Shown piece after piece: positions 6,141 through 21,259 of a stretch of DNA of 64,000 bases. The stretch spans positions 11,160,001 through 11,224,000 of the forward strand of contig OU015569.1 in NCBI GenBank assembly GCA_907165135.1, written 5' to 3'. Within the stretch, counting starts at the first letter, position 1. Each line of letters starts with the position of its first letter. The DNA is from Oikopleura dioica (taxonomy: Eukaryota; Animalia; Chordata). The position numbers and the translations under genes were made by a program. Under the pieces are notes generated by a model that was not told the origin of the DNA, made no database searches, and was given only the letters and a program-made list of their open reading frames with translations.

Positions 6141-9100
6141 TTTGAGATATTTTCTTAATTTTCAAAATTAAGATTATTTTAATTTTTTTATAGGAAATCC
6201 CCCAAAATGGTTAAAAAAAGCAACGATGCCCTTTCCTTTGAATTATCAGCGCTTGAATTCATGCGCGAAAGGTGGCGACTCTGAAATAATTCGCATTGAT
6301 TTCGGATTTTCTCCTTCTCAATTCTATAGCTGTTAATTTTTGCTAAACACCGAGCTCGCTACATATCTATTGCCCAAATGCTTGGGGTGACATTAAAACG
6401 ATAGTTATCCCCTTCATTAAGAATTGCCCGAGAATAAAATATTAATTTGTGCTCAAATTTATCGCAGGTAATTTCTCTCTTTTGAACACAAAACCATTAA
6501 CCTACTCTCGAGTGCGGGGTAAATCTTCGTTCGCGGCTTTTGTCGCTGGAATCTGTGTCTGTCTCACCATACACCAGATAGGCACTAGAATTTATATGCT
6601 TGTTTTGTCAAGACTGGCAAATTGAGTAAAGAAAAATGTCGAAAAACTGGCAATTCTGTTCGTTTTTGAATAAAAATTCGGCAATTTTGATTGGCTTTTG
6701 CAAGTCCTGATTGTATTTAAAGAACTGATTGAATAAACTGTTGATCGAATTTTACCAGCAACAAGAAAGAAGAATAAACAAAGCTGCAGAAGAGATCACA
6801 ATCGAAATGGACTGCCAAAAGGTGCTGAAAAAGGAAGAAAGTCACCTTCTTAGAGCGAAAGAAAAGGAAAAACTTACAATTCCAGCTTCATGTTTTTTCA
6901 TTTTTTCGAACCATCGGGCGCTCTCAATCATTCTCTAGCTGTCATTTTTGGCAATTGCTGTGGCGAATGCTCGAAATGGCAGGCCCTTTTTCGATATGGC
7001 TGGTTCAATATAATCCTCTCTCGAGGATCAGTGAACTCAAGCGAAGGTGTTGCTGCTACCCTCTCCTGCAACAACTGCTATCCCCCTTTCCACCCATTCC
7101 TGGGCGATCAATTATTCACTCAAAAAAGTATAAAATATATACCCGTAACGGTAACACATGTCATTTTCAGATATTCTCTCTCATCTTTTTTTTTGCTTTC
7201 CCAAGCTTCTTTTTATCATTTTTTAAAAAGAAAGGTCAAAGAGAATTTTCAAAAAAGACGAATTTAAAAGACAAATGTAAGAAAAAAAGTCTAGTTTATT
7301 GTTTTTGGCAGGTAGTTTTGTTGACGATTTCGCATTTCTTATTTTATACAAGCAAGCATCAGCAGCGATTGAGCTCATTTTGTCTCCCCACAAAATAATT
7401 CTAAAAAATCCTCGTTGATTTCAATTCACTGAAAATGGAAACTTACCAATCGATCTGATTCCATCGCGCTGGGTCTTTGTAACGACGTTCCCTAAATCAT
7501 CTTCAGATGAAAATTTTAACCTACTGTCTGTGTAAATGAAGGCTTCGTGTCCCTAGAAAGTTGGTTAGAAAAATAGGAAAAGCGCGCTAGAAGTGTGACT
7601 TGCCTCGTTTCTGCAGCCAATGTGAATCTTTGGCGCAGGCAGAAATTCCAGTCTGCTGAATTTTGAAATGGCCCCAATGTAACCTTCTGTGTGGCGACAC
7701 GTGACCGTCCAAATCGGCTCCGCTCGTTTGGTCTTTGACGAAAAGACGAACTCAACGGGTGAAATGTCGAAAATGTTCGAATCGTACTCGTTGTTGATTT
7801 TTCGGAAGCATTTCGATGCCTCGCAGTTTCCTTTTAGTGTTATTCAGAGTTAAAATCAAAATCTTAGATGATCACTTTAAGTTTTTCAATTCTTATTCAA
7901 TGAGTTCCACTCGTTCTTCTAGATAAAAAAACAATATTGACAGGGTTTTTAATAACTTTATGGTCTCTAAAAAAACGAACTTTTCTAGAGAAAATCTGCG
8001 AGATTTTGATAGAAAATAGTCTGAACAGTTATTTATATTGAAAATTTCCTATAGTTTCATATTGAGAATGGTTTTGTCTTGATTTCAACTTTCAGATTCA
8101 GGTGAAAAGAGTAAGCTTTGGAATATAGGATTACTTGTCCAAATGGATCCTGAGCCTAACCCTAACCCTAAATAAAGTTTGGTCAATTTGAAGCTGATTA
8201 AAATTCAAATTCTTTTACTTTTTTACAAGAATTGCTCTTTGCTCTGGTCACACTTTCCTGTACACTCCAACATGCAACTCTAAAACGCAATTTCCTCACC
8301 AATCTTATCTCTTAAAATTCTCAAACCTGAATGGGCACATCAGTCCGCACTTGCGTGCAATATTCTGTGCATTCTCTTTTCTTGCAAAAAGCGTGCACAG
8401 AACTCGAGTACAGTACTGTCATGCAGGCGGGAGCGAAAAGTCTCATTTCGATAAAAAAAAAGTTTTCTTTTTTTTATGTTTCAAAAAAAAATTCTCTTTT
8501 TGATATTTTTCAACCAAACGTGAGTATCTGAGCTTCTTCTCAGAGGCTTTTATTCGCAACTTGGTGAAACTGTTCACGGCGGGGGCTTATCGGTGTCGGT
8601 TACAAAGCTCGGCTTATCTTGTGTAAACGATTAAAGCCATTTCACTAGTAAATGAGCTGCCCAGATGCTTTTCAAAGCGACCGAGCCAGAACAGCTAGAA
8701 ACTCGACAAAAAACATTCAAGCCACGAGATTCGGCGAATTTAGCGCGCCGCAAATTGAGCAACAGTCGACTGCGAAGGCGATTTTGAATTAATTCGACTA
8801 AAGCAAATTCATCTTAAAAACCTCACCATCACGTTCTAGGGCTCATTTTTCGTCTGTTTCAAATTTAACTCAAACTACTGCATTGACCAAAAATCTGGTC
8901 AAAAGAAAAATTTAGCAAGTTTTTGCTTTAACTTGCTTTTATAAAAAATATCAAAAAAAAAAGAGCCTAAAAATTTATTTAATCGAAATTTTATGGAAAG
9001 AAAGAGAGTCCCAAAGACTGGAAAAAGAAAGTTCGAATGGAGTAGATCTAATGAGTTACGGTGGCAAGAGGCTTTAGGCTTGGTGTTGAGTGTTGCACAA

Positions 9101-10075
9101 GTTCCAATTCTGAAGGCTTAGAGGGATGAAGCTAACATGAAACCTATATCCTCGTCTAAGACAGCGATTTAGCGAATCCGTTCCAGCCGAAAAGGGTGAG
9201 TTTGACTACGCCTTTCAAGGCAAGATCAAAAGAGCACGAAAAAGAAAAGATTTGAACAAAGAGTTCGTCACAATTGAGTTACTTTTGAAGTGGCAATAAA
9301 ATCTTGGAATAAAATTGATGGCCCGTTGTAGCGATAGCTCTCCTTCTGCGGTCAGTCTTTTAAAAATATCTTTTCCATCGTAATTTTTCAAAAATTGAAA
9401 ATGAATTTATTTGCTCAAGACGCCATTCGTGGTTACGTTGTCACAACGTAAAGAGAAAAAAAAATAATGACTGTGCTTTAAAATCTGAGAAAATGAATAA
9501 ACAGTTGAAAATTGCCAAAAAATGATAAATTTCAAATAAAGAAATGTTATAATATTATTAAATGAGCGCAAATGTAAAGTGAGATTGTCCATTCGAAAAA
9601 ATACAGCATATAAATTATATGATATATTATAAAAAAAATTCATCGGCCATTTCATCTGCTCAAAATTGAAAGAATAAAAAAATTAAAAATGTCTGTCTTT
9701 CGATTCAAGTACAAAATGAATTCTCCAGAAACATTAGAGCAGTCAACAACATGGTTAGAATATCAAGAGAAAAAGAAGAAGAAAAATAATAACGAATAAA
9801 ATGACTCTCTAAGCCCAAGGCCTACGAATTAGCCACGAACAAATCGGTTTTGCAAGTTGGTGAAAAAACGTGGTCTCGACAAATCATTGCGATATTTCTC
9901 ATCCTCTTAGTTCAATCCCCGGTAACTCTATTTCAACGTCGGCTTATTCGCGCTGGATTATGATTCTATATTCATTCGCAAAAAATCAATCCTAAGAAAA
10001 AACTCGACTCACGCAGGCAATTTCTTTGAGACGGGATTTTTATTTTTAATTGTGACAGTAGCTATTTTTTAAAAT

Positions 10076-12677
10076 TCAGTTTCCGTAAGAGCTCATGATT
10101 GCGATGTCGTTGTCAAAAGAGCTTCCTTCGGCGAGGCGCACGCATTTGTCCATTGTTTCCGAGTTTCGAGTGATTGGATCTAAAATGACCATCTTTCCGC
10201 TATCAAAAATGAACTGTACCTGTCATCCAGTAATCAGCAGCAACGGAAGCTCGTCTGGTCGATTTGAGCACAACATCATTTCGAATTTGCTCCCGCGAGT
10301 CGCCCAGCTTCAAATCGGCGTATTTGGAGCCAACATCGTAGAATGAATTCGGCTCGAAGAAGCCGATTCGGACGAGGTTCGGCGCGATCTGGTACATTCT
10401 GTTTCGTACAGATTGAATTGTCTCGTACGGAAGCGTAGTGTGCAGTTCTTCGGAAAGCATTTGGACGATTTTCCAGTCTTCGATTGCGCCGCCTGAAATG
10501 AACAAGATTAATGTTAATGAAAAAGTGAATATCATTGAGTAACTACAATGAAAAAAGGCGATCTTTTTCTAGCGATTTTCCAAGATCATATAGATTCTTT
10601 AAAGAATTTAGTTAAAACTAAACACACTTGTAAAGTTGTAAAGACAGTGTAAGTATTGACATCGACTATTGTCAGTTTTTATTCAACCTGATTCCGTTCT
10701 ATTCGGTTTTTACCCGCGAAAACGCGTCCAGGCGGTCAATTTTGAGTTTGTCAAAGTAATCGTCATCTGTGTAATTATCAGAATATTATGATTTACTTGT
10801 TTATATCAACCTAAACAGCTAGTTAAAAATTGAAGTATTCTTCATTTTTATCCAATCTTATGGTTTTTCTTTTCTAGAAATTCCGAAAATGATTTTCTCA
10901 AATTATGCTGCCTTCTTTTTTAGTTGTCTTTTTTGTCCCTCCTCCCCGAAGTAGGCCATTTCTAGTAACAATATCAAATAAAACTTATATTTTAAATATT
11001 TTTGGCATTTTGATAATTTTTAGGAAACATACTTGGTGGAGTAACAACTTGGCGCGTTCGCTGTGGCCTTCCTTCGAGATTGACGAAAGTAGACGATTTC
11101 TCCGTGTAGGCGACCGAGGGGAGAATGATATCGGCGAGCTCGGCGCCAGCGTCCATGTGTGTTCCGATGTAGATGACGGTCGTGTGGTCGGAGAAACCCT
11201 CGATTTGGTACTCGTTGCACAAATCCGCTCTGGAGACTTTACGCCCGTCCGCGCCCAGGAGCAGGAGAACGTCGGGCTTGGTTCGTCTGATTCCGAGAGG
11301 ACCCGATTTCCAACCGAGATCCAATGCTGCCTGGAGCGACGCGTGAAGATGGACAGTGTTGAAGATTCCTGAACTCGCTTTCTAGCGAATTTCGGAGGAA
11401 AGAAAAAAGAGTACCGTTGATGAAGAATTCGCCCATCATGTCCGTCTCATTAACTTTATTCGCAATAAGATTGCCCTTGATCGCATTGGTAAGTCGCTGA
11501 ATTTCGTGATTGAACGCCACCGCATCAGGTCTAGCATGAATGCCGCTGCCGCAGAGGATCATCGGCCGTCTCGAATTAAACAGAGTCTAAAGCGCAATTA
11601 AACCTCTCAAGTTCGACGAAGAAATTCACCTCGCAAAAGCTGTGGGTTCCATCAGCAAGCTCAGAGATCGTGTCTGGCGAGGCGCCCAAGTGTTTGGTGC
11701 TGTAGCCCAGATTCATTTTCAATCCAACGATGCCGACTTTGCATTTGTTCTCGTGGTATGTTTTCTGAAAGAAATGGTTTTAGGAGAACAAAGGTTTTTT
11801 CTTACCTGGATTCGTGTATTCACTAGTGGCGCTTCCAGACGAGGATTGAAGCCGACTAATATGATGCAGTCCGCATACTCGATTCCAGTAAGAGGCATGT
11901 TCATCAGATAATGACTCCTGAAGCAAAAATGTCAAATACTTTGTCCCATCTTCTTTTTTACTCAAAATCAGAATATAAACTCCTGAGCCTACCTAAAATC
12001 CGTGTTGACGGCGCAGTATTCTTCAGTAAAGTAACTCTCTGAGCCCAAAATGTTGAGCAAATCGCGCGTCACTGTCAAAGTCTCTGCATCAGTAAACGGC
12101 CCGGCAAGAGCGGCTACTCGCTCTCCCCGTCAATCAGCACATCTCCGCAAACTAAAGGAATATTAAAATAAATAATCAAAGAAAAGATGCTACTTTGAAG
12201 GATCTCATCCCAGCCGTGGGTCGACAAGGCGCCGGAAGGATTCCTAATCATTGGTTCGGTGATTCTAGCCTTGCTCAATCCGTCGTAGCTGAAACGCGCC
12301 TTGTCGGTTGCGAAGTCTTTGTTGACATCTTGATTCGGACAGGCGCGAATGTCGATGATGTTGTTGAAACGAGCGCCGATGCGGATGTTTGTTCCAACAG
12401 CGTCTGAAAAGTTTATGAAAAAAAAAAAGATTATTTTCATCAATTTTTGCTTACCAAGAACATCAATGCTGTCGACATATTTCGTCTCCCATCTCGGAAA
12501 GAGAAAGGGAGTCTTTTCGCTGTCGTTATTTTTGCCGCCCTTGCTCGGCTTGCTCCTCTTGCGACCGGGCACCATCGGCCCCGTGTCGATCGAGTAGTCA
12601 GGCTTCATTTCCCCGCCTCTCTGATATCCCAGCAGACGAGCTGAAGCTCGCGAAAGAACATGCGCTTGACGGAACAT
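10076..12677 (-). CDS. NDUFS1: Complex I 75 kDa subunit-like protein, C-terminal (molybdopterin-fold) part only, with mitochondrial presequence
   Basis: Exons read RWETKYVDSIDVLDAVGTNI, DKARFSYDGL, ADCIILVGFNPRLEAP, VIYIGTHMDAGAELADIILPSVAYTEKSSTFVNLEGRPQ, EDWKIV..LPYETIQSVRNRM, DYWMTDPITRNSETMDKCV. These are colinear with NDUFS1 from about residue 240 to the C-terminus. Confidence 0.9.
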
Positions 12678-12887
12678 TGCCTTTTTTTATCGCTTTTTCA
12701 CTCTTGCAAAAATATTTTCTCGCTAAAGTGAAGAGAAAGATTCGCAATCGCCGCAGCTCGATTTCAAAATGCAGGTGTTTCGTTTTTTGTTGTTGAAGAT
12801 GGCTTGATGGCGCGCACGCAATTTTTCCGCCGTTGAATTTCGCGATTTCAAAGATTGAGAGCAAAATTGAGAGTCAAAGAGAGAGAA
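12678..12887. promoter_or_regulatory. Head-to-head (bidirectional) promoter between the NDUFS1-like gene and RING-SIM gene copy 1
   Basis: Only ~210 bp separate the divergent ATGs (12677 minus, 12888 plus). Contains GATGGCGC and TTTTCCGCC motifs shared with the upstream regions of the other copies. Confidence 0.55.
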
Positions 12888-13725
12888 ATGAATTCCAACG
12901 CCAGAATTCCCGACAACTGCGTTCTCTGCGATAAAGTCGTCATAGAGAGCTATTGGTTCCCGATTGAAAGTTTGAGATGCTGTCATCAACAGTACTGTGC
13001 CGAGTGTCTCGGTTTAGTGGCTTGGTGTCCAAAGTGCCATCAATTTCTTGTAAATGGCCGAAAAATTATCTTCACTCATAAATTTTAAGGGACCAAAAAG
13101 GAAAAATGGCGCCAGCAGAGAAAGCTTTGCGAAACCCATCCCCTCCCTCCCTGTTGTGGAAGTTCTTAAGAAATCTACGCCTAATGCTGAAGTCAACAAT
13201 TTTCATGAAGACTTCCATGACGACGAGGATTGTGTTATCATCGAGGATGAGTCGGAAGGCAATTCAAACAAGTCCCCGAAGAAAAGAAAGATGGAAGTCA
13301 ACAATAACGACGATTGCATCCTCATCGAAGATGATCTGGATGGTAATTGAGAATCCTTTTTTTTTTCATAAAAATAAGCTTCTTTCAGAAGTTATTCCTC
13401 CAGTGCCGCAACCACGAAAATCAATCCTCAAGAACAGCAAGTGCGCCACTTCTCTTCAACAATCAAGTCACAAGAAAAGAAGGATCGATGTCGACAATAA
13501 CAACGATATTATAATCATCGACGATGAACCAGATGGTAATTCAAAAATCATTAATTGATAAAATAATACTATTTGCTTTTAGAACGCATCCCTCCAGTGA
13601 CGAAACCTCAAAAAAGATCGATCCTCAAGAAAAGCAGGCGCGTTTATTTCTCATCAAATTCTTCTGTCTACGTGTTTCTAAAAGAAACAGACAAACCTAT
13701 GCGTCCATTGCCAACCGACCGCTAA
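12888..13725 (+). CDS. Tandem family copy 1: RBBP6-type RING-like finger + 3 SIM-like motifs + NLS + SILK/RVxF PP1-docking tail
   Basis: CVLC-x16-CCHQQYCAEC-x6-CPKC; 40-nt intron 13050-13089; DCVIIEDE, DCILIEDD, DIIIIDDE; last exon SILKKSRRVYF; stop 13723-13725. Confidence 0.75.
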
Positions 13726-13944
13726 GGAATCAAAGTAGCCGATTATACCTCGCTCTTTCTTATTATGACCATAAAGTTTGATTGTAGATTCATGAAAATA
13801 CTATTTGAACATAACTTTTATCCACCTGTACAATTGTTATCTACACTGTAAAAATTTGTAAAAATATAGCATCAATGTCAATGATTTATCGACAAAAAAC
13901 AAAACTATCCTACAGTAGTTCATATTGAGAACCAGGAAAAGATT

Positions 13945-14150
13945 TTATTTCTTGAGAAGAGGGATCAGTTTTCTCTGAGTTTCTCGTGAATTTGCTGTTT
14001 CTTCTGATAAGTGAAATTCTCTGTCGCAGAAAAAGTTTGGATTCCGAAATTTCGGACACGAGTTCTTCCAGCTTTGGTTTTGCTCTTTACCAGCCACGGA
14101 AGATCTCGGATTTTGTTGCTTTTCCTTTTCGAATTTGAGAAATTTTGTCA
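13945..14150 (-). repeat. Dispersed duplicate of 27420-27660 in inverted orientation
   Basis: Minus strand here and plus strand at 27462-27650 both encode DLPWLVK.K.KA.RTRVRNFGI.T.SATENFT.QKKQQIH.KLR; roughly 85% identity by eye. Confidence 0.75.
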
Positions 14151-14269
14151 ATGATTCGCCAAACAACAAAACCAGCGGAGTTAACATTCAGGAAGCAAAG
14201 CAATTACTGCAGCCTTTTTCTAAAATCCTTTTGAATTGTTCGATTTGAAAATGCAGATGTTCAGTTGCT

Positions 14270-14318
14270 GATGGCGCTGGCGCACTTTTTCCCGCCTTTT
14301 TTGTTTCAAAAATTTGAA
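14270..14318 (+). promoter_or_regulatory. Conserved proximal promoter block of the tandem family (GATGGCGC, E2F-like TTTCCCGCC, CHR-like TTTGAA)
   Basis: GATGGCG at 14270, TTTCCCGCC 14288-14296, TTTGAA 14313-14318. Same arrangement at 17099-17145; variants upstream of copies 1, 3 and 5. Confidence 0.45.
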
Positions 14319-14343
14319 ATCGACAAAGAGGAAAATAAGAGGA

Positions 14344-15197
14344 ATGACCTTCAGTGTGTCAGTTTTTGACAATTGCGATGTCTGCCGCAAAGTCTTCAGG
14401 TTCAATTTGAAAGATTTTGGATGCTGCGGTCAGAAAGTCTGCCCCAGCTGTTTCTATGTGACGATTTGGTGTCGAAAGTGCGAACTTTTTCATCATGTAA
14501 ATTGTCGACTTATATTTTTACTTAATTTTATTAAAGGAGTTCAAAAAGAAAAATGCAAAAGGCTGCATTAAACCCATTGTGAGACGAAGAGGTGTACCAG
14601 AAGAATATTTCGACTCGCCGGTTATTGAAAATGATCTCAACGAAGCTTTTCACGAGGCTTTCCATGAGAGGCATTGCAAAATCATCGAGGATGAGTTGGA
14701 CGGTAATTCAAAATCAAATTTTAGCAAAATAATTTTTTGTGTTAGAAGTCATCCATCCAGCGCCGAAACAAAAAGAATCAGTCTTCAACGAAGAAAAGGA
14801 TGCTTCTTCTCCTCCACAATCAAGACACGGCTCCCTTTACAACCGCATTTACGCTTTCATCGACAAGAACAATCCTTTTTCTGGAGAAAGCCTTACAACT
14901 GAAAAGCCATCCCCGAAGAAAAGAAAGATTGACATCAACAATAACGACGATTGCATAATCATCGAGGATGATAAATCCGATGGTAATTCAAAATATTTTT
15001 GTTTTTTTTTTAAATAAGCTTTTTTGTTAGAACGCATCGCTCCTGTGCCTAAACCAAAAACATCGATCCTCAAGAAAAGCAAGCGCGTCACTTTCTCATC
15101 TGATTCTCTTTCTGTTTGCTCGTTTCTCAAAGAAACTGACGAACCTATGCGTCCATATCCAAAAAGAAATCGCAGAAAAGTCAGCGCTGATATTTGA
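14344..15197 (+). CDS. Tandem family copy 2: RING-like + SIM-like + SILK/RVTF
   Basis: CDVC..CCGQKVCPSC..CRKC; CKIIEDE, DCIIIEDD; TSILKKSKRVTFSSDSLSVCSF; same intron positions as copy 1. Confidence 0.75.
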
Positions 15198-15546
15198 AGC
15201 GTCTCCTTTTATTTAATTTTTTCTGGCTCTTTTTCTTATTATGTACATAGAGTTTCATTGTAGATTCCTCTAGACACTATTCGAAGATATTTATTATCCA
15301 CCTGTATACTAGCCCATTTCACTGTAAAATTTAAAAATTTGTTAAATATAACTTCATTGTCAATGATCCGACAAACAACGAAACAAACGGAGTTTCTTCA
15401 AGAAAAGCAATTACTGCAGCCTTTTTCTAAAATCTTTTTGAAATTTTTGATTTGAAAATGCAGATTTAGTTGCTGATGGCGCTGGCGCACTTTTTTTCCA
15501 CCGTTGATCATTTTTTTTCAAATTTTCAAAGAGCAAAATAAGAGAA

Positions 15547-16704
15547 ATGACCTTCATCGTCAACAAAAAATGTAGTGTCTGCCGCAAAGTCGTCAGCTTC
15601 AATCTCGAAGAATTGAGATGTTGTCTTCGAAAAACCTGTCCCGACTGTGTTCTTGACAAAATCCGGTGTCCAAAGTGCATAGTTTTTCTTCATGTAACTT
15701 GTCTAAAAACTATTCTTTTTTTGATTTTATTTAGGACCGTAAAAAGAAGAAAAGAAGGGGCTCCATGAACCTAACCTTGACTAGACAGAACGCGTTTCGA
15801 GGAAATATTGGGGGAAAATATTTCAGCTCTTCGGTTGTTCTGCCTCAGACGCCTGACTGCATAATCATCGAGGATGAATCAGGTAGTATTTCAAACATTT
15901 TTTTATATAAGTATTTCTGTTAGAAGTCATCCCTCCAGTGCCAAAACCAAGAAAATCACTCCTCAAGAAAAACAGCCGCAACACTCCTCTTCAATCAGCA
16001 AAAGTGATCTTGAATCTAGATGTTGAAGAAGGCGGGAAAGTAAGATCATATGCTGAATTCATTAGCTCATTTCGCGCTTAGGCTGATGGACTTGAAAAGA
16101 CTCCCAAACCAGATCAGAAATGCGAGCGATCATGGATCGACTTAGGCATGGCCAGCCAGAGCTTTCTTTACGAGCAGTTCTTGTACCTTGTTTACGCTTT
16201 CATCAACAGGAAGAAATCTTCTTCTGGCGAGAGTTCTCAAAAGCTCGTTGTTCCTGCTCCAAAACCGGAAAAGCGAGTTTGCTCGCTTTCGTCTGAAAAG
16301 CAGTCCCCGAAGAAAGGAAAGATTGATATCAACAATAACGACGATTGCATAATCCTCGCGGATAAAGGGAATGGTAATTCAAATTCAATTTTTATTCAAA
16401 ATAAGCTCTCGTTTTAGAAAAAGTCCCTCAAATCCCAAAACCAAGAACATCAAAGCTTAAGAAAAACAGCCGTATTTCTTCTCCTCAGGAATCAGCAAAA
16501 ATGACCTTGAATCTGGACCATGGAAAAGGAAAGAAAAAGACCGCCGAGCGAGCTCAGAAATCTGAGCTTCAAAAAAGCATGGACGGAGACATCTTCCTTT
16601 ACGAGCAACTCTTGGAACTGGTTCACGTCTTGATCAGATGCAAGGAGAGCTCTGAAAATCTCGCCGTTCCCTCTTCAAAGCCGGAAGAGCAAGTTTCATT
16701 ATGA
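15547..16704 (+). CDS. Tandem family copy 3: RING-like + SIM-like modules, no RVxF tail
   Basis: CSVC..CCLRKTCPDC..CPKC; DCIIIEDE, DCIILAD; five exons joined by short GT-AG introns; ends EEQVSL*. Confidence 0.7.
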
Positions 16705-17168
16705 CGATAATGAATCACAATTTGTGATTTTTGAAGTGTCGCTTTTAATTTAATCATTTCTCGCTCTTTGTTTATATGTACATGAAGTTTCATTGTAGAT
16801 TCATCAAATCATTATTTGAACATAACTATTATTCACCTGTATACTTATCTTCGAAACTGTAAAAACTGTAAAAACATGTAAAATACACAATCGTCGATGA
16901 TTCGACAAACATCTAAACCCATGGTCCATGGAGTTTATGGTTATTCAGGATTTAAAACCATTAGTACAGGCTTTTTAAATTAGCGCAGCATAAATTCATT
17001 TAAAATAATATTTTAAATTTCCACATGCGTTTTTTTTTAAATTCGCCGCGCTCGTTCAGCACCACGATCAGTCTTTCAACAGTCTCAACAGATGGTTCGA
17101 TGGCGCTGGCGCACTTTTTCCCGCCTTTTTTTGCAAAAATTTGAAAGTCAAAGAGGAGAAAAAGAGGA

Positions 17169-17972
17169 ATGACCTTCAGTGCATCAGTTTTCGACAATTG
17201 CGATGTCTGCCGCAAAGTCTTCAGGATGAATCTTACAGATTTAGGATACTGTGGTCAGAAAGACTGCCACAACTGTTTCTTTGTGCCGATTTGGTGTCGA
17301 AAGTGCAAAGTTTTTCATCATGTAAATTTCCGACTTATATTTGTTTTACTCAATCTAATTAAAGGACCTAAAAAAGAAAAATGAAAAAGGCTGCATTAAA
17401 CCCCTTGCGAGACGAAGAGGTGTACGAAAAGAATATTTCGACTCTCCGGATCTCAACGAAGCCTTCCACGAGGCCTTCCATGAGGAGCATTGCAAAATCA
17501 TCGAGGATGAGTTGGACGGTAATTCAAAATCATATTTTTGCAAAATAACTTTTTGTGTTCGAAGTCATCCCTCCAGTGCCAAAACAAAGAGAATCAATCC
17601 CCAACGAAAATAAGGATGCTCCTTCTCCTCAACAGTCAAGACACGGCTCCCTTTACAACCGCATTTACGCTTTCATCGACAAGAACAATCCTCTTTCTGG
17701 AGAAAGCTCTACAACTGAAAAACCGATGCCGATGAAAAGAAAGATTGATATCAACAATAACGAAGATTGCATAATCATTGAGGATCAATCCGATGGTAAT
17801 TCAAAATCATTTATATTAAAAATTAGATATTCTTTCAGTTGTCATCCTTCCAGTGTCGAAACCAAGAAAATCGAAGAAAAATCAGCTCTTTACTTCTGTC
17901 CAAGAGTCAGAAAGCACGATCTCAAATTCTCTAGACTCAGAAGAGCAAATTGGCAGTCAAAAACACAAATAA
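17169..17972 (+). CDS. Tandem family copy 4 (closest to copy 2); RING has CC>YC, no RVxF tail
   Basis: CDVC..YCGQKDCHNC..CRKC; exons 2-3 nearly identical to copy 2; last exon ends IGSQKHK* at 17970-17972. Confidence 0.7.
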
Positions 17973-18482
17973 AACTTGCTATTGCTGGTCTTGCTATGTG
18001 TGCTCTATGTGCTCTTTCGAGTCAAAGCCACTCGAACCCGTCCGTCATGACGAGTATGAAATTTGAATTGTGTTTTAAATAATCATTTATCGTTCTTTCT
18101 TTATATGTTTATAAGGTTTCATTGTAGATTCATCAAATCATTATTTGAACATAACTATTATTCACGGCTGCCGGGGGTTTTGCCTGAGCGGGGGTTTGAC
18201 CTGGCGTCGGATTTGCCTGAACGGGGGTTTGACCTGCCAGGTAAATCCGACGCTCAGGTCAAACCCCCGTCAGGCTAATCTGACGCTAGGTCAAATCCCC
18301 GTTTGGTCAAAGTTTCATTTACGGAAAAGGACGGAACAAACTCACACAAGGGGGGATAGGCTAGGCTTCAGTAACCCTAAGACGTGCTTTTTTAAGGTTA
18401 ATGGAGTTGTCCAGCTCAATTCCGCCTTATAGACCCCCATACGCGATACCTTTTTAGAAACTTTTACGAACTTTGAAGGTAT

Positions 18483-18841
18483 AAAATTCTAGAAAACTCC
18501 ACTTCCGGTCGATTCTATAGCCGGATGTTGAAGAAAGTTAGGAGTTATGGTAAAGTGTGACCTATCAAATTGATGCCCAGAAAATTTTGAGCCATCCTAT
18601 AATCAATATGTCAGAAGAAACAGTCCCAAACGTGGTCAAACCGACCGGTAAAATTATGTAAAAAAGGCATAAATTGATATTTTTTCTGTTTTATCCGTTT
18701 GGTTTGATCCCCGGTAAAGTTGATTCTTTTCTCAAATGAAAGGAAATCGTCTGTGCATCAATTTGATATCTCACACTTCACCCTCCAACCTTGATTTCGT
18801 CAACTTCCGTCGTCAACCGGAAGTGGAATTTTCTAGAGTTT
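18483..18841. repeat. ~29 bp inverted repeat pair inside the MULE-like element (probable nested MITE relic)
   Basis: AAATTCTAGAAAACTCCACTTCCGGTCGA versus the reverse complement of TCAACCGGAAGTGGAATTTTCTAGAGTTT; 3 mismatches. Confidence 0.55.
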
Positions 18842-19012
18842 AAAAATTTCTCCTTGCTTGCAAATTCTTGAACTACTACTAGAAGAAAATTGTTCTAGTT
18901 CGCAAAAATACGAGCTAGGAGAAAATTCTCCTAGTGACGGCGTACAACTGATACACAGTGGCAAAAAGGTTAAACATTCTCGCATGATAAGATTAAAGTA
19001 AATTTTGATTAA

Positions 19013-19766
19013 GGATATAGCCGTTCTCAAGGCACTTTCGTAGCGCCGAAATGGAGCGATAAATTTTTTTCATTTCAAGACAGGTCCTACCTAAAATTAT
19101 GTCTGGAATTCGATTCTGATTTTTTTTTTAATTTTTTTCAAAGAAAATTTCTCTCTGGAGCGATTTGAAATCTTACGATCACTTTTTCTCGAATTTTTTC
19201 AATTAAATCGCTAAAACTAAACCGTGTTTTATTATAAATAACTGCTAATCTATCAACCTAGGGCCTCAAAATTTCAAAACCCGAGCAAATTTCCATTCTA
19301 GCGTCTTCTTCTTTTTGGCTTTTCTTTTTCATAAATGCTGCGTTCAGGGCGCTGGGCCAATCAGCGCGCTCTTTCACATGCGCGCCTCACCGCGCGATGG
19401 AGGAGGGCGCCCAGCGCAGCAAACCAGAGCGCTGTCTGACGCTTCGGCTTACTCAAGTAAGCCTCATAAAAATGGCTCTAGAACCATAAATAATTTGAAT
19501 CTATTAAACTTTAAGCCCTAGAAATGTAGAGAAAGGTCCAAATTTTTAATTTATCAAAAAAACTCGACCGATTTAATGGAAAATTCTCGAGAAAAAGTGA
19601 TCGTAAGATTTAAAATTGCTCTAGAGAGAAATTTTTCCATTAAAAAATTAAAAAAAACACTAGAATCGGGTTTCTTAGGCAATTTTAGGTAGGGTTCCTT
19701 TTGAAATGAAAAAATTTTATCGTCCCCTTTTGGCGCTACGAAAGTGCCTTGAGAACGGCTATATCC
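19013..19766. mobile_element. 754 bp Kolobok-like MITE nested in the MULE-like element
   Basis: TTAA|GGATATAGCCGTTCTCAAGGCACTTTCGTAGCGCC ... GGCGCTACGAAAGTGCCTTGAGAACGGCTATATCC|TTAA. Long imperfect TIRs; GC-rich core with CCAATCAG. Confidence 0.85.
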
Positions 19767-20279
19767 TTAATAATAAATGAATAATTTTCAATTTAGAAAG
19801 TCACATTTTTCCATCCAAAAAACGGCGCTTTTGCCTGAATGGGGGTTTGACCAGAGCGTCGGATTTACCTGGCAGGTCAAACCCCCGTTCAGGCAAATCC
19901 GCCGCCAGGTCAAACCCCCGCGCAGGCAAATCCGCCGGCAGCCATTATTCACCTGTATACTTATCTTCAAAACTGTAAAATCATGGAAAATATACAATCG
20001 TCGATGATTCGACAAACATCAAAACACATGGAGTTTATGGTTATTCAAGATTTAAAACCATAAGTACAGGCTTTTTAAATTAGCGCAGAATAAATTTATT
20101 TAAAATATTATTTTATATTTCCGCATTCGTTTTTTTTTAATTCGCCGCGCTCGTTCAGCACCACGATCAGTCTTTTTGATCAACAGATGGTTCGATGGCG
20201 CCGGCGCACTTTTTCTCGCCGTTGAGTTCTCTGATTTCGAAAATTTGAGCGAGAAAAGAGCGTGAAAAAAGATAGAGAA

Positions 20280-21259
20280 ATGGAAGTTGATTCTCAAAGT
20301 CGGATTTCTACCCGCAATGCCAAAGCGAGATTACGGGCGAAGACTATGAACGAGGCGATGGAAGAACTTAACGAAATGAGTCGAAAACATCTCGTTAAAA
20401 GGAAGCGTTGTCCTGGAAAGAAGCGTCATGTAAGAAATCAACTATGAGCTCGTTTTATGGAAATTATTTCAGACAAAACTGTGCACTCTTCGCAACACAA
20501 AAGACGTGATCTTAATAATGGAGGAGGAGCTTGCTGAGTACGAAACTGGGCTTGAAAACCTGTGTAGAATGCCTGAATTAGGGGTTAAAAAATCTTTAAT
20601 GAAAAGCAACGGGGCCTTTCCGAAAAGATTGGAAAGGAAATAGCGCGGCTTTCAACCCTGAGTCAGGTATTCTACACAGGTTTCCGAGCCCAGGTACGAA
20701 AGGCACAATAAACTGCTAGAAAAGTATGTTTCGGATAACGATGGATTCTTGCGGACACAGCAAGAAAGATCGGAAAATAAGCGAAAAGAAGATGAGAAAA
20801 AACAAGCTCTTCTTGTGGCTCAGTACGAAAAGGACATTTCCAACTACGAAAGCGAGCTGGAAAAGATCAGGCTGGAGCTCGCAAAATGCAAAGAAGAACT
20901 GAAATCGAAAGGAGAATCGCGCCGCGATTCAGTTGAAAAGCAGTCGACGAAGAAAATAAAGATTGAAATCAATAATAACGACAATTCGACAAACAAATTC
21001 ATCAAGCTTGAGCCGCAAGGTAATTCATATCCATTTCTATATCAAATAAAATATCCCGTTAGATTTCATCCCTCCATCGCCGAAATCAAGAGGATCGAAG
21101 CTGAAATCGAAAAAGCGCGTTTCTTTCTCCCCGGAGAATCAGATCCGCGTGTTCAAAAGAGAAGCTGGCAGAACAATGCGTCCACTACCGGTTCCATACC
21201 GGCGTATACAAACTCGCAGAACTGGCAAAGCTGTTCGAAAAACAACCCGTCCGTCATGA
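20280..21259 (+). CDS. Tandem family copy 5: divergent bHLH-like head + coiled coil + NLS + RVSF/phi-phi PP1-docking tail
   Basis: Exon 1 RNAKARLRAKTMNEAMEEL; 43-nt intron 20430-20472; TKLCTLRNTKDVILIM; 156-nt MITE-derived intron 20538-20693; coiled coil; last exon KSKKRVSFSPENQIRVF; shares promoter and 3' UTR with copies 1-4. Confidence 0.7.
20546..20693. mobile_element. 148 bp MITE (CTGGGC...GCCCAG family, 8-bp TSD) forming a GT-AG intron together with its TSD
   Basis: TSD GTACGAAA at 20538-20545 and 20694-20701; ~38 bp imperfect TIRs. Confidence 0.85.

Follow-up and report, generated by a model that had tools for sequence, protein, structure and literature searches.

A conserved larvacean gene for NDUFS1 without its iron-sulphur segments: a candidate product of gene fission

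Why would an animal gene for a core subunit of complex I begin only after the point at which its iron-sulphur (Fe-S) clusters should already have been encoded? This question is raised by a minus-strand gene at positions 10076-12677 of a 64,000-nucleotide stretch of Oikopleura dioica DNA (contig OU015569.1, positions 11,160,001 to 11,224,000), the whole of which is referred to here as the window. The gene codes for a homologue of NDUFS1, the 75-kDa subunit, which belongs to the 14 core subunits of complex I and, to our knowledge, has proved to be a single polypeptide in all animals examined to date. The original prediction, made from the sequence alone, was that all three Fe-S segments are missing and that the gene is either one half of a split gene or a paralogue. 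From the analyses described here, it appears fairly probable that the gene is one product of the fission of nuclear NDUFS1, and that it codes only for the cofactor-free C-terminal two-thirds of the protein.

Domain content of the gene

The gene and the parts of its first exon are located as follows.

10076-12677, minus strand: whole gene, NDUFS1 C-terminal half, ATG to stop (gene model, splice sites, Pfam, PDB matches, tblastn with the full-length NDUFS1 P0035)
12677-12455, 12403-12194, 12151 (or 12122)-11993, 11917-11806 and 11764-11630, minus strand: exons 1-5 (gene model)
11586-11415, 11368-11033, 10492-10220 and 10179-10076, minus strand: exons 6-9 (gene model)
12591-12677, minus strand: residues 1-29, MFRQAHVLSRASARLLGYQRGGEMKPDYS, a presequence-like leader, basic and with few acidic residues (composition, MAFFT, proportion of nonsynonymous differences, pN)
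12495-12590, minus strand: residues 30-61, the conserved linker IDTGPMVPGRKRSKPSKGGKNNDSEKTPFLFP (MAFFT, pN)
12456-12494, minus strand: RWETKYVDSIDVL, the start of the robust NDUFS1 homology and of the Pfam domain Fer4_NDSU1 (PDB, MAFFT, Pfam, BLAST)

Nine exons run from an ATG at 12677 to a TGA stop at 10076-10078, and the introns, all of them GT-AG, comprise seven of 40-75 nucleotides (nt) and one of 540 nt; such tiny introns and the compact layout are in keeping with O. dioica as the source. Exon 1 accounts for 74 amino acids (aa) of a spliced product of 564 residues in the frame-preserving model, or of about 574 if the assembly is short by one base. Pfam searches with the exon pieces detected Fer4_NDSU1 (PF22151) at 1.4e-09 and Molybdopterin (PF00384) on four exons, with a best value of 9.4e-20; one more exon matched the latter at 0.006, below the cut-off. 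The C-terminal NuoG segment, NADH_dhqG_C (PF09326), gave a weak match (0.046) on a 33-aa piece. Every top match among the solved structures in PDB was the mitochondrial 75-kDa subunit NDUFS1, the best reaching 1.5e-14 for exons 1-2 and 3.4e-24 for exon 7. The coordinates, start, stop and NDUFS1 homology given in the original prediction were all found to be correct by the gene model, Pfam and PDB.

The PDB alignments place exon 2 on residues 251-328 and exon 7 on residues 513-613 of the mammalian NDUFS1 precursor. The aligned region begins at about residue 251 of the 727 residues of this precursor; similarity extends back to KPYAF..RPWE by eye and in MAFFT, and in tblastn with P0035 residues 245-642 were covered by the window gene. 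Homology starts from the first positions of PF22151, and the gene begins at the boundary between the Fe-S and molybdopterin-like domains. Fer4_NDSU1, the molybdopterin-oxidoreductase-like domain and the C-terminal NuoG segment are present and collinear with NDUFS1, with about 36% identity to ordinary animal NDUFS1 over about 510 residues. In comparison with canonical animal NDUFS1 (PDB 6g2j chain G and 5xtb chain M), the Fer4_NDSU1, Molybdopterin and C-terminal regions are thus shared in order from about residue 240 to the end, whereas the larvacean gene is without the approximately 210 residues that carry N1b, N5 and N4, and has a new leader and linker in their place.

The full-length NDUFS1 P0035 was used as a control in Pfam, where it matched Fer2_4 (N1b) at residues 18-94 and 8e-21, NADH-G_4Fe-4S_3 (N5) at 101-140, Fer4_Nqo3 (N4) at 154-222 and Fer4_NDSU1 from 236. 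None of these three Fe-S domains was detected by Pfam in exon 1 or in the first exons of five relatives, even at E<=10. The whole 64-kb window, including 51 kb upstream of the gene, was scanned for Fe-S coding sequence by tblastn with six NDUFS1/NuoG N-termini, by a profile hidden Markov model (HMM) of the Fe-S domain against all stop-free segments, and by a six-frame search for the Cys patterns of N5, N4 and N1b, and all three were negative. For the individual segments, Fer2_4 (PF13510, the N1b 2Fe-2S domain) was absent from exon 1 in Pfam and was without a tblastn or HMM match in the window; the N5 motif H-x3-C-x2-C-x5-C (PF10588) was absent from all six frames of the window, with Pfam and HMM also negative; and Fer4_Nqo3 (PF22117, the N4 4Fe-4S domain) was not detected in exon 1 by Pfam. 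The predicted lack of all three segments, in the gene and upstream of it in the window, was therefore borne out by tblastn, HMM, motif scan and Pfam alike.

The first exon in other larvacean lineages

Exon 1 together with the start of exon 2 was used as a query against a collection of 5.8 billion proteins, which returned eight independent open reading frame (ORF) fragments (P0271-P0278) from marine ENA/Tara, JGI and Logan assemblies. Six of the eight open with a Met and a basic leader, continue through the conserved linker into RWETKYVDSIDVL, and then reach an intron; MLRNIVRNRNLGRSSRQ, MRNIIPHLRQKRKY, MRRSIFFQQRRLPFF, MRNLAKKFTIGLKSQRN and MRNCLSRFRIHQKRS are examples of the leaders. Of the remaining two, P0271 begins at an internal Met, the full ATG being kept on its contig (L012), and P0278, which runs across what appears to be an additional intron, retains just the final portion of the linker block. 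The same first exon is present in at least six divergent larvacean-type lineages from marine metagenomes, and in each of the five lineages checked the ATG is preceded, at a distance of 1-29 codons, by an in-frame stop.

Contigs were examined for four lineages. L005, which comes from a Tara scaffold of 40.6 kb, and L009 contain the whole gene, with about 77% and 69-83% protein identity, respectively, to that of the window. On the orthologous contigs the gene lies between a dual-specificity phosphatase (upstream) and a dynein heavy chain (downstream), neighbours that differ from those of the window. The nearest lineage, L012, is about 96% identical in exon 1 and has the same ATG and about 80 nt of 5' untranslated region, with unrelated sequence farther upstream.

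Counted over their first 25 residues, the complete N-termini contain 5-7 K+R and 0-2 D+E (P0271 and P0278, whose starts are not true N-termini, were left out of these counts), and the leader is otherwise unconserved in sequence. It is followed by a conserved first-exon block, D(I/V)GPMVPGRK(R/K)SKP…EEKSAFLFPRWETKYVDSIDVL. The linker part of this block, D(I/V)GPMVPGRK(R/K)SKP...EEKSAF.FP, is present in fragments P0271-P0277, and its C-terminal part alone in P0278. In the MAFFT alignment the converged block reads in full D(I/V)GPMVPGRK(R/K)SKPxKxDxEEKSAFLFPRWETKYVDSIDVL, and an intron follows at the same position as in the window. The last part of the linker, K-x-x-F-x-F-P, aligns with KPYAF of NDUFS1. 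MAFFT also placed D-x-G-P of the linker on D-x-C-P of the last N4 ligand, which lies in the motif I-D-x-C-P-V-G-A-L-T-S-K-P, with Gly for Cys in seven of the eight fragments and in the window. The linker motif may be a relic of the end of the old Fe-S domain, but this alignment is supported neither by BLAST, which aligns the region otherwise, nor by Pfam, which sees nothing there.

The window gene was compared with those on L005, L009 and L001 over 221-543 aligned codons, and for the whole protein pN was 0.14-0.16 and the proportion of synonymous differences (pS) 0.85-0.89, the latter being saturated. Because pS is saturated and pN is low, the lineages are judged to be deeply diverged and the protein to be under strong purifying selection. 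Values of pN were 0.45-0.49 in the leader (residues 1-30) and 0.155-0.165 in the linker (residues 31-74); over the remaining residues, in L005 and L009, they were 0.13-0.15. The linker, being under as much constraint as the body of the protein, is therefore translated in this frame. Presequences evolve fast, and the leader does likewise. On these comparisons, the stand-alone form is old and under selection and, as a family, is not a decaying copy, which agrees for the gene family with the view taken in the original prediction.

As regards the origin of the family, the PDB matches were ranked by score in the order mammal, fly, fungi and bacterium, with plants lowest. In the maximum-likelihood tree, the three larvacean sequences fell, with 98/99 support and on a long stem, within the eukaryotic/animal NDUFS1 group. 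These results fit vertical inheritance of the animal gene and rapid evolution thereafter. One further sequence, P0081 (P0279; L094:817-2961, Logan SRR18067345), an intronless and very fast-evolving full-length NDUFS1 of a eukaryote, grouped with the larvaceans in the tree (89/83) and has several derived residues in common with them. It was set aside: the gene is intronless, its overall identity is lower than that of ordinary NDUFS1, and the grouping is probably long-branch attraction.

Intron positions differ wholesale between the lineages. L005 and L009 lack introns 3-6 of the window: one uninterrupted exon of about 240 codons (L005:10618-11552, L009:6317-7255) corresponds there to window exons 3-7. 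An intron is present instead after ...NEYQIEG, within exon 7 of the window, in L005, L009 and L001. Intron 1 of L005 (10225-10335) seems to open with CG (…GTGCTAG/CGTTTGG … AAATAG/AT, with slashes at the junctions), a non-canonical donor, at a junction where the window and L013 have GT.

Fission and the alternative explanations

Four further features of the locus bear on how the gene should be interpreted.

12687-12689, minus strand: in-frame TAA, three codons 5' of the ATG (sequence)
12855-13088, plus strand: beginning of a divergently transcribed RING-like finger gene, which heads a tandem array (ORF list)
12114-12152, minus strand: problem site at the start of exon 3 (gene model, sequence, comparison with L005 and L009)
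10493-11032, minus strand: the sole long intron, of 540 nt (gene model)

The ATG of the RING-like gene, at about 12888, is only some 211 bp from that of the NDUFS1 half, and there is therefore no room for nearby upstream exons. The array to which it belongs extends over 12855-21259 on the plus strand and carries acidic-hydrophobic (I/V)IIEDD…DGNSK repeats. No terminal inverted repeats were found at the 540-nt intron, and tRNA and Rfam scans of 9000-14000 gave no matches.

If the gene is a product of fission, it would supply the molybdopterin-oxidoreductase-like C-terminal two-thirds of the 75-kDa subunit. The leader would be cleaved after mitochondrial import, and the mature protein would dock on the N-module of complex I and act there as the scaffold that the C-terminal domain of NDUFS1 provides. 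A separate nuclear gene elsewhere would make the N-terminal module, which would carry N1b, N4 and N5 and assemble alongside, as in stramenopile Nad11. Because these three clusters are the only known electron path through NDUFS1, from flavin mononucleotide (FMN)/N3 to N6a, an Fe-S module must exist somewhere. The organism retains complex I genes, with nad1, nad4 and nad5 in the mitochondrial DNA and a nuclear nad3 with a targeting peptide; nad2, nad4L and nad6 were undetected (PMC11384887).

Several observations weigh against fission. The complementary Fe-S half was not found in the 64-kb window or in the orthologous contigs. A profile of six N-terminal domains was searched against the 5.8 billion proteins, and among the best 8000 matches the named ones shown were bacterial NuoG fragments and two fish partials; the Fe-S N-terminal profile returned 80 loci from JGI metagenome contigs, near-full-length and with 60-71% identity, none of them exon-like, so that bacterial NuoG swamped the matches in both collections. 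RNA reads from three bulk runs and one single-cell run were mapped to 9900-13500, and only 0-2 fell on the gene. Its 5' end and splicing are gene-model predictions and its expression is putative, as is the role of the leader as a mitochondrial-import presequence, which is suggested by composition. The window copy also has a one-base frame problem in exon 3, which is considered below.

Some results of these searches stand apart from this question. A mixed profile of P0017 and larvacean exons, used to look for an annotated or transcript-derived larvacean protein, was dominated by P0017 and yielded nothing but ordinary animal NDUFS1. Several proteins of 220-300 aa that consist of the NuoG N-terminal part and lack the molybdopterin domain (e.g. 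P0152, P0249, P0255 and P0257) were seen on contigs of 47 kb to 1.5 Mb, and stand-alone Fe-S halves may also occur in other organisms. The sole spot covered by the RNA reads was 9900-9941, where two runs (X4 and X5) gave 4-9 reads, 95-99% alike, on 42 bases, with fixed differences at 9922 and 9930. These reads run on into sequence absent from the window, and could reflect a splice junction or a dispersed repeat.

The original prediction had pointed to a pyrimidine-rich AG just before RWETK as a site onto which upstream Fe-S exons might be spliced. This AG (12494-12493) is part of an AGA Arg codon. The Arg codon before WETK is AGA in L012 and CGT, CGG and CGA in L005, L009 and L013, respectively, leaving no AG in the latter three, and constrained coding sequence lies upstream in frame; the proposed acceptor was therefore not upheld. 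Because the AG is unconserved, the upstream sequence is under coding constraint, the ATGs are conserved and no Fe-S domain lies upstream within 51 kb in the window or within 10 kb (L005), 4 kb (L006), 5 kb (L009) or 3 kb (L013) in the orthologous contigs, splicing of upstream Fe-S exons into exon 1 is judged from the sequence to be very unlikely. An annotation artefact, in which the true mRNA would have, joined inside exon 1, Fe-S exons that lie far upstream or that come by trans-splicing from a different locus, would be most surprising. Oikopleura does use spliced-leader trans-splicing, AG dinucleotides exist inside exon 1, and the near-absence of RNA reads in the four runs would be compatible with such an error; yet, like the ATG, the upstream stops are shared by the different lineages, as is the coding constraint over the entire linker, several unrelated genes lie in the 51 kb upstream that lack Fe-S coding sequence, and the neighbours differ between lineages.

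Whether the window copy is itself broken is a separate question from that of fission or paralogy. Exon 2 ends in phase 1, and the strong acceptor ttttaatattcctttAG at 12153-12152 leads to ICGDVLIDG, then to a frame break and a TAG at 12114-12116. The G run at 12125-12128 is GGGG, one base short of the five needed by comparison with the orthologues, and L005 and L009 read ICGDSLIDAGERVAALAGP over the exon 2/3 junction. The only alternative acceptor that keeps the frame is the AG at 12124-12123, which is weak and without a pyrimidine tract, and whose use loses 10 residues conserved in the orthologues. A homopolymer miscount in the assembly is the simplest explanation; alternatively, the break might be a real allele or frameshift. 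It is improbable that the window copy is a fresh pseudogene or null allele, created by a one-base deletion in exon 3 in a gene family that is still functional. This would account for the stop reached from the strong acceptor and for the retention of the 10 residues in the orthologues, but all other exons are intact and the site is a homopolymer, which long-read assemblies are prone to miscount. The exact 187-aa product ending at the stop is not on record in any public assembly, which is weak evidence in the same direction. The original description of the rest of the protein as intact and intron-split thus applies to the intron-split structure and to every other exon, and fails at the exon 3 G run, where the frame breaks.

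The original choice between fission and paralogy was only partly settled. The stand-alone gene is real and conserved, whereas the two origins were not separated by a search that covered the window and the orthologous contigs. The same scope of search, for an Fe-S half or a full-length copy, leaves some room for a truncated paralogue, in which a normal full-length NDUFS1 would exist elsewhere and the duplicate would have lost the Fe-S domain and come to serve a different function, perhaps that of an assembly factor, a regulatory factor or a tissue-specific accessory. The strong divergence of the protein (about 36% identity over about 510 residues) and its long stem branch would fit neofunctionalisation. 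On the other hand, no second larvacean-type NDUFS1 C-domain stood out among the best 150 of 1088 matches in 1.84 billion representatives, and the larvacean-like matches among these 150, which were 80-93% identical, all fit the present gene. Selection is uniform over the whole C-domain and fission at this exact boundary has repeated precedent, and we regard a paralogue as rather unlikely. Decidedly improbable is a loss of the Fe-S module, or its replacement by a non-homologous or highly diverged protein, in a complex I remodelled beyond a simple split. The mitochondrial system of O. dioica is indeed extreme, with nad2, nad4L and nad6 undetected and nad3 nuclear, and the Euglenozoa show that one NDUFS1 half can be swapped for another protein. 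Against this stands the dependence of the electron path from FMN/N3 to N6a on N1b, N4 and N5; moreover, in the known cases it is the C-terminal half, and not the Fe-S half, that is dispensable or replaceable.

Comparison with known split systems

No paper naming both Oikopleura and NDUFS1 was found in a literature search linking the two. A split Nad11/NDUFS1 is known as a kind, and one in an animal that derives from a gene already in the nucleus and is conserved across larvaceans appears to be unreported; this novelty is provisional until the Fe-S half is located. If fission is correct, the Fe-S and scaffold modules would be genetically separable even in a gene that is already nuclear, with no need for mitochondrion-to-nucleus transfer, unlike in the stramenopiles, and the module boundary that recurs in protists would be a general fault line of NDUFS1. 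The larvacean gene would also offer a natural experiment on the role of the cofactor-free C-terminal domain, and a testable example of the way in which rapidly evolving animals remodel mitonuclear complexes. In annotation, such a gene will be scored by orthology pipelines as a truncated or partial NDUFS1, and the other half may be overlooked. A broader proposal, to which we give an even chance, is that larvaceans divided the nuclear gene of a core, electron-carrying subunit between two polypeptides that are imported separately, which would be the first fission of this kind in an animal; that, together with the nuclear nad3 and the undetected nad2, nad4L and nad6, complex I was re-architected as a whole; and that the GPMVPGRKRSKP linker is a new docking element replacing the lost covalent link.

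The closest parallel is Nad11 of the stramenopiles, in which at least four independent splits have occurred at the same domain boundary, in Ectocarpus and other PX-clade algae with a nuclear C-terminal half carrying a transit peptide, and also in eustigmatophytes and some diatoms (PMC4824035). It is because the larvacean gene looks like a C-terminal half of the Ectocarpus type that fission is favoured over the other explanations. In both groups the break falls between the Fe-S N-terminal and the molybdopterin-like C-terminal domains, the C-terminal half is encoded on its own in the nucleus and starts with an extension that resembles a targeting peptide (in the larvacean, by its composition), and the two halves presumably come together in complex I. 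The ancestral gene of the stramenopiles was, however, mitochondrial, and the split goes with the transfer of one half to the nucleus, whereas the larvacean ancestral gene was already nuclear, as in all animals, and both halves would be nuclear. The larvacean protein also differs in its conserved novel linker (GPMVPGRKRSKP...), and its case is known from the C-terminal half alone.

In the Euglenozoa (trypanosomatids, Diplonema and Euglena), NDUFS1 consists of the Fe-S-bearing N-terminal third alone; its C-terminal part either is missing altogether or has given way to a recruited protein of unrelated origin (PMC12699882). The two cases have in common that the halves are separable modules, which complex I tolerates as different polypeptides; the euglenozoan arrangement is nevertheless the mirror image of the larvacean one, with no homologous gene for the C-terminal half. 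The attribution of a split 75-kDa subunit to euglenozoans in the original prediction was hence imprecise, as the C-terminal part is missing or replaced there (PMC12699882) and true two-gene splits are those of the stramenopiles (PMC4824035). Within O. dioica itself, the nearest comparison is the nuclear nad3 described by Klirs et al. (2024, PMC11384887), whose study covered normally mitochondrial genes only. There too, a core subunit of complex I has rearranged genetics and an acquired presequence, but the event was the move of a whole gene from the mitochondrion to the nucleus, and not the fission of a nuclear gene.

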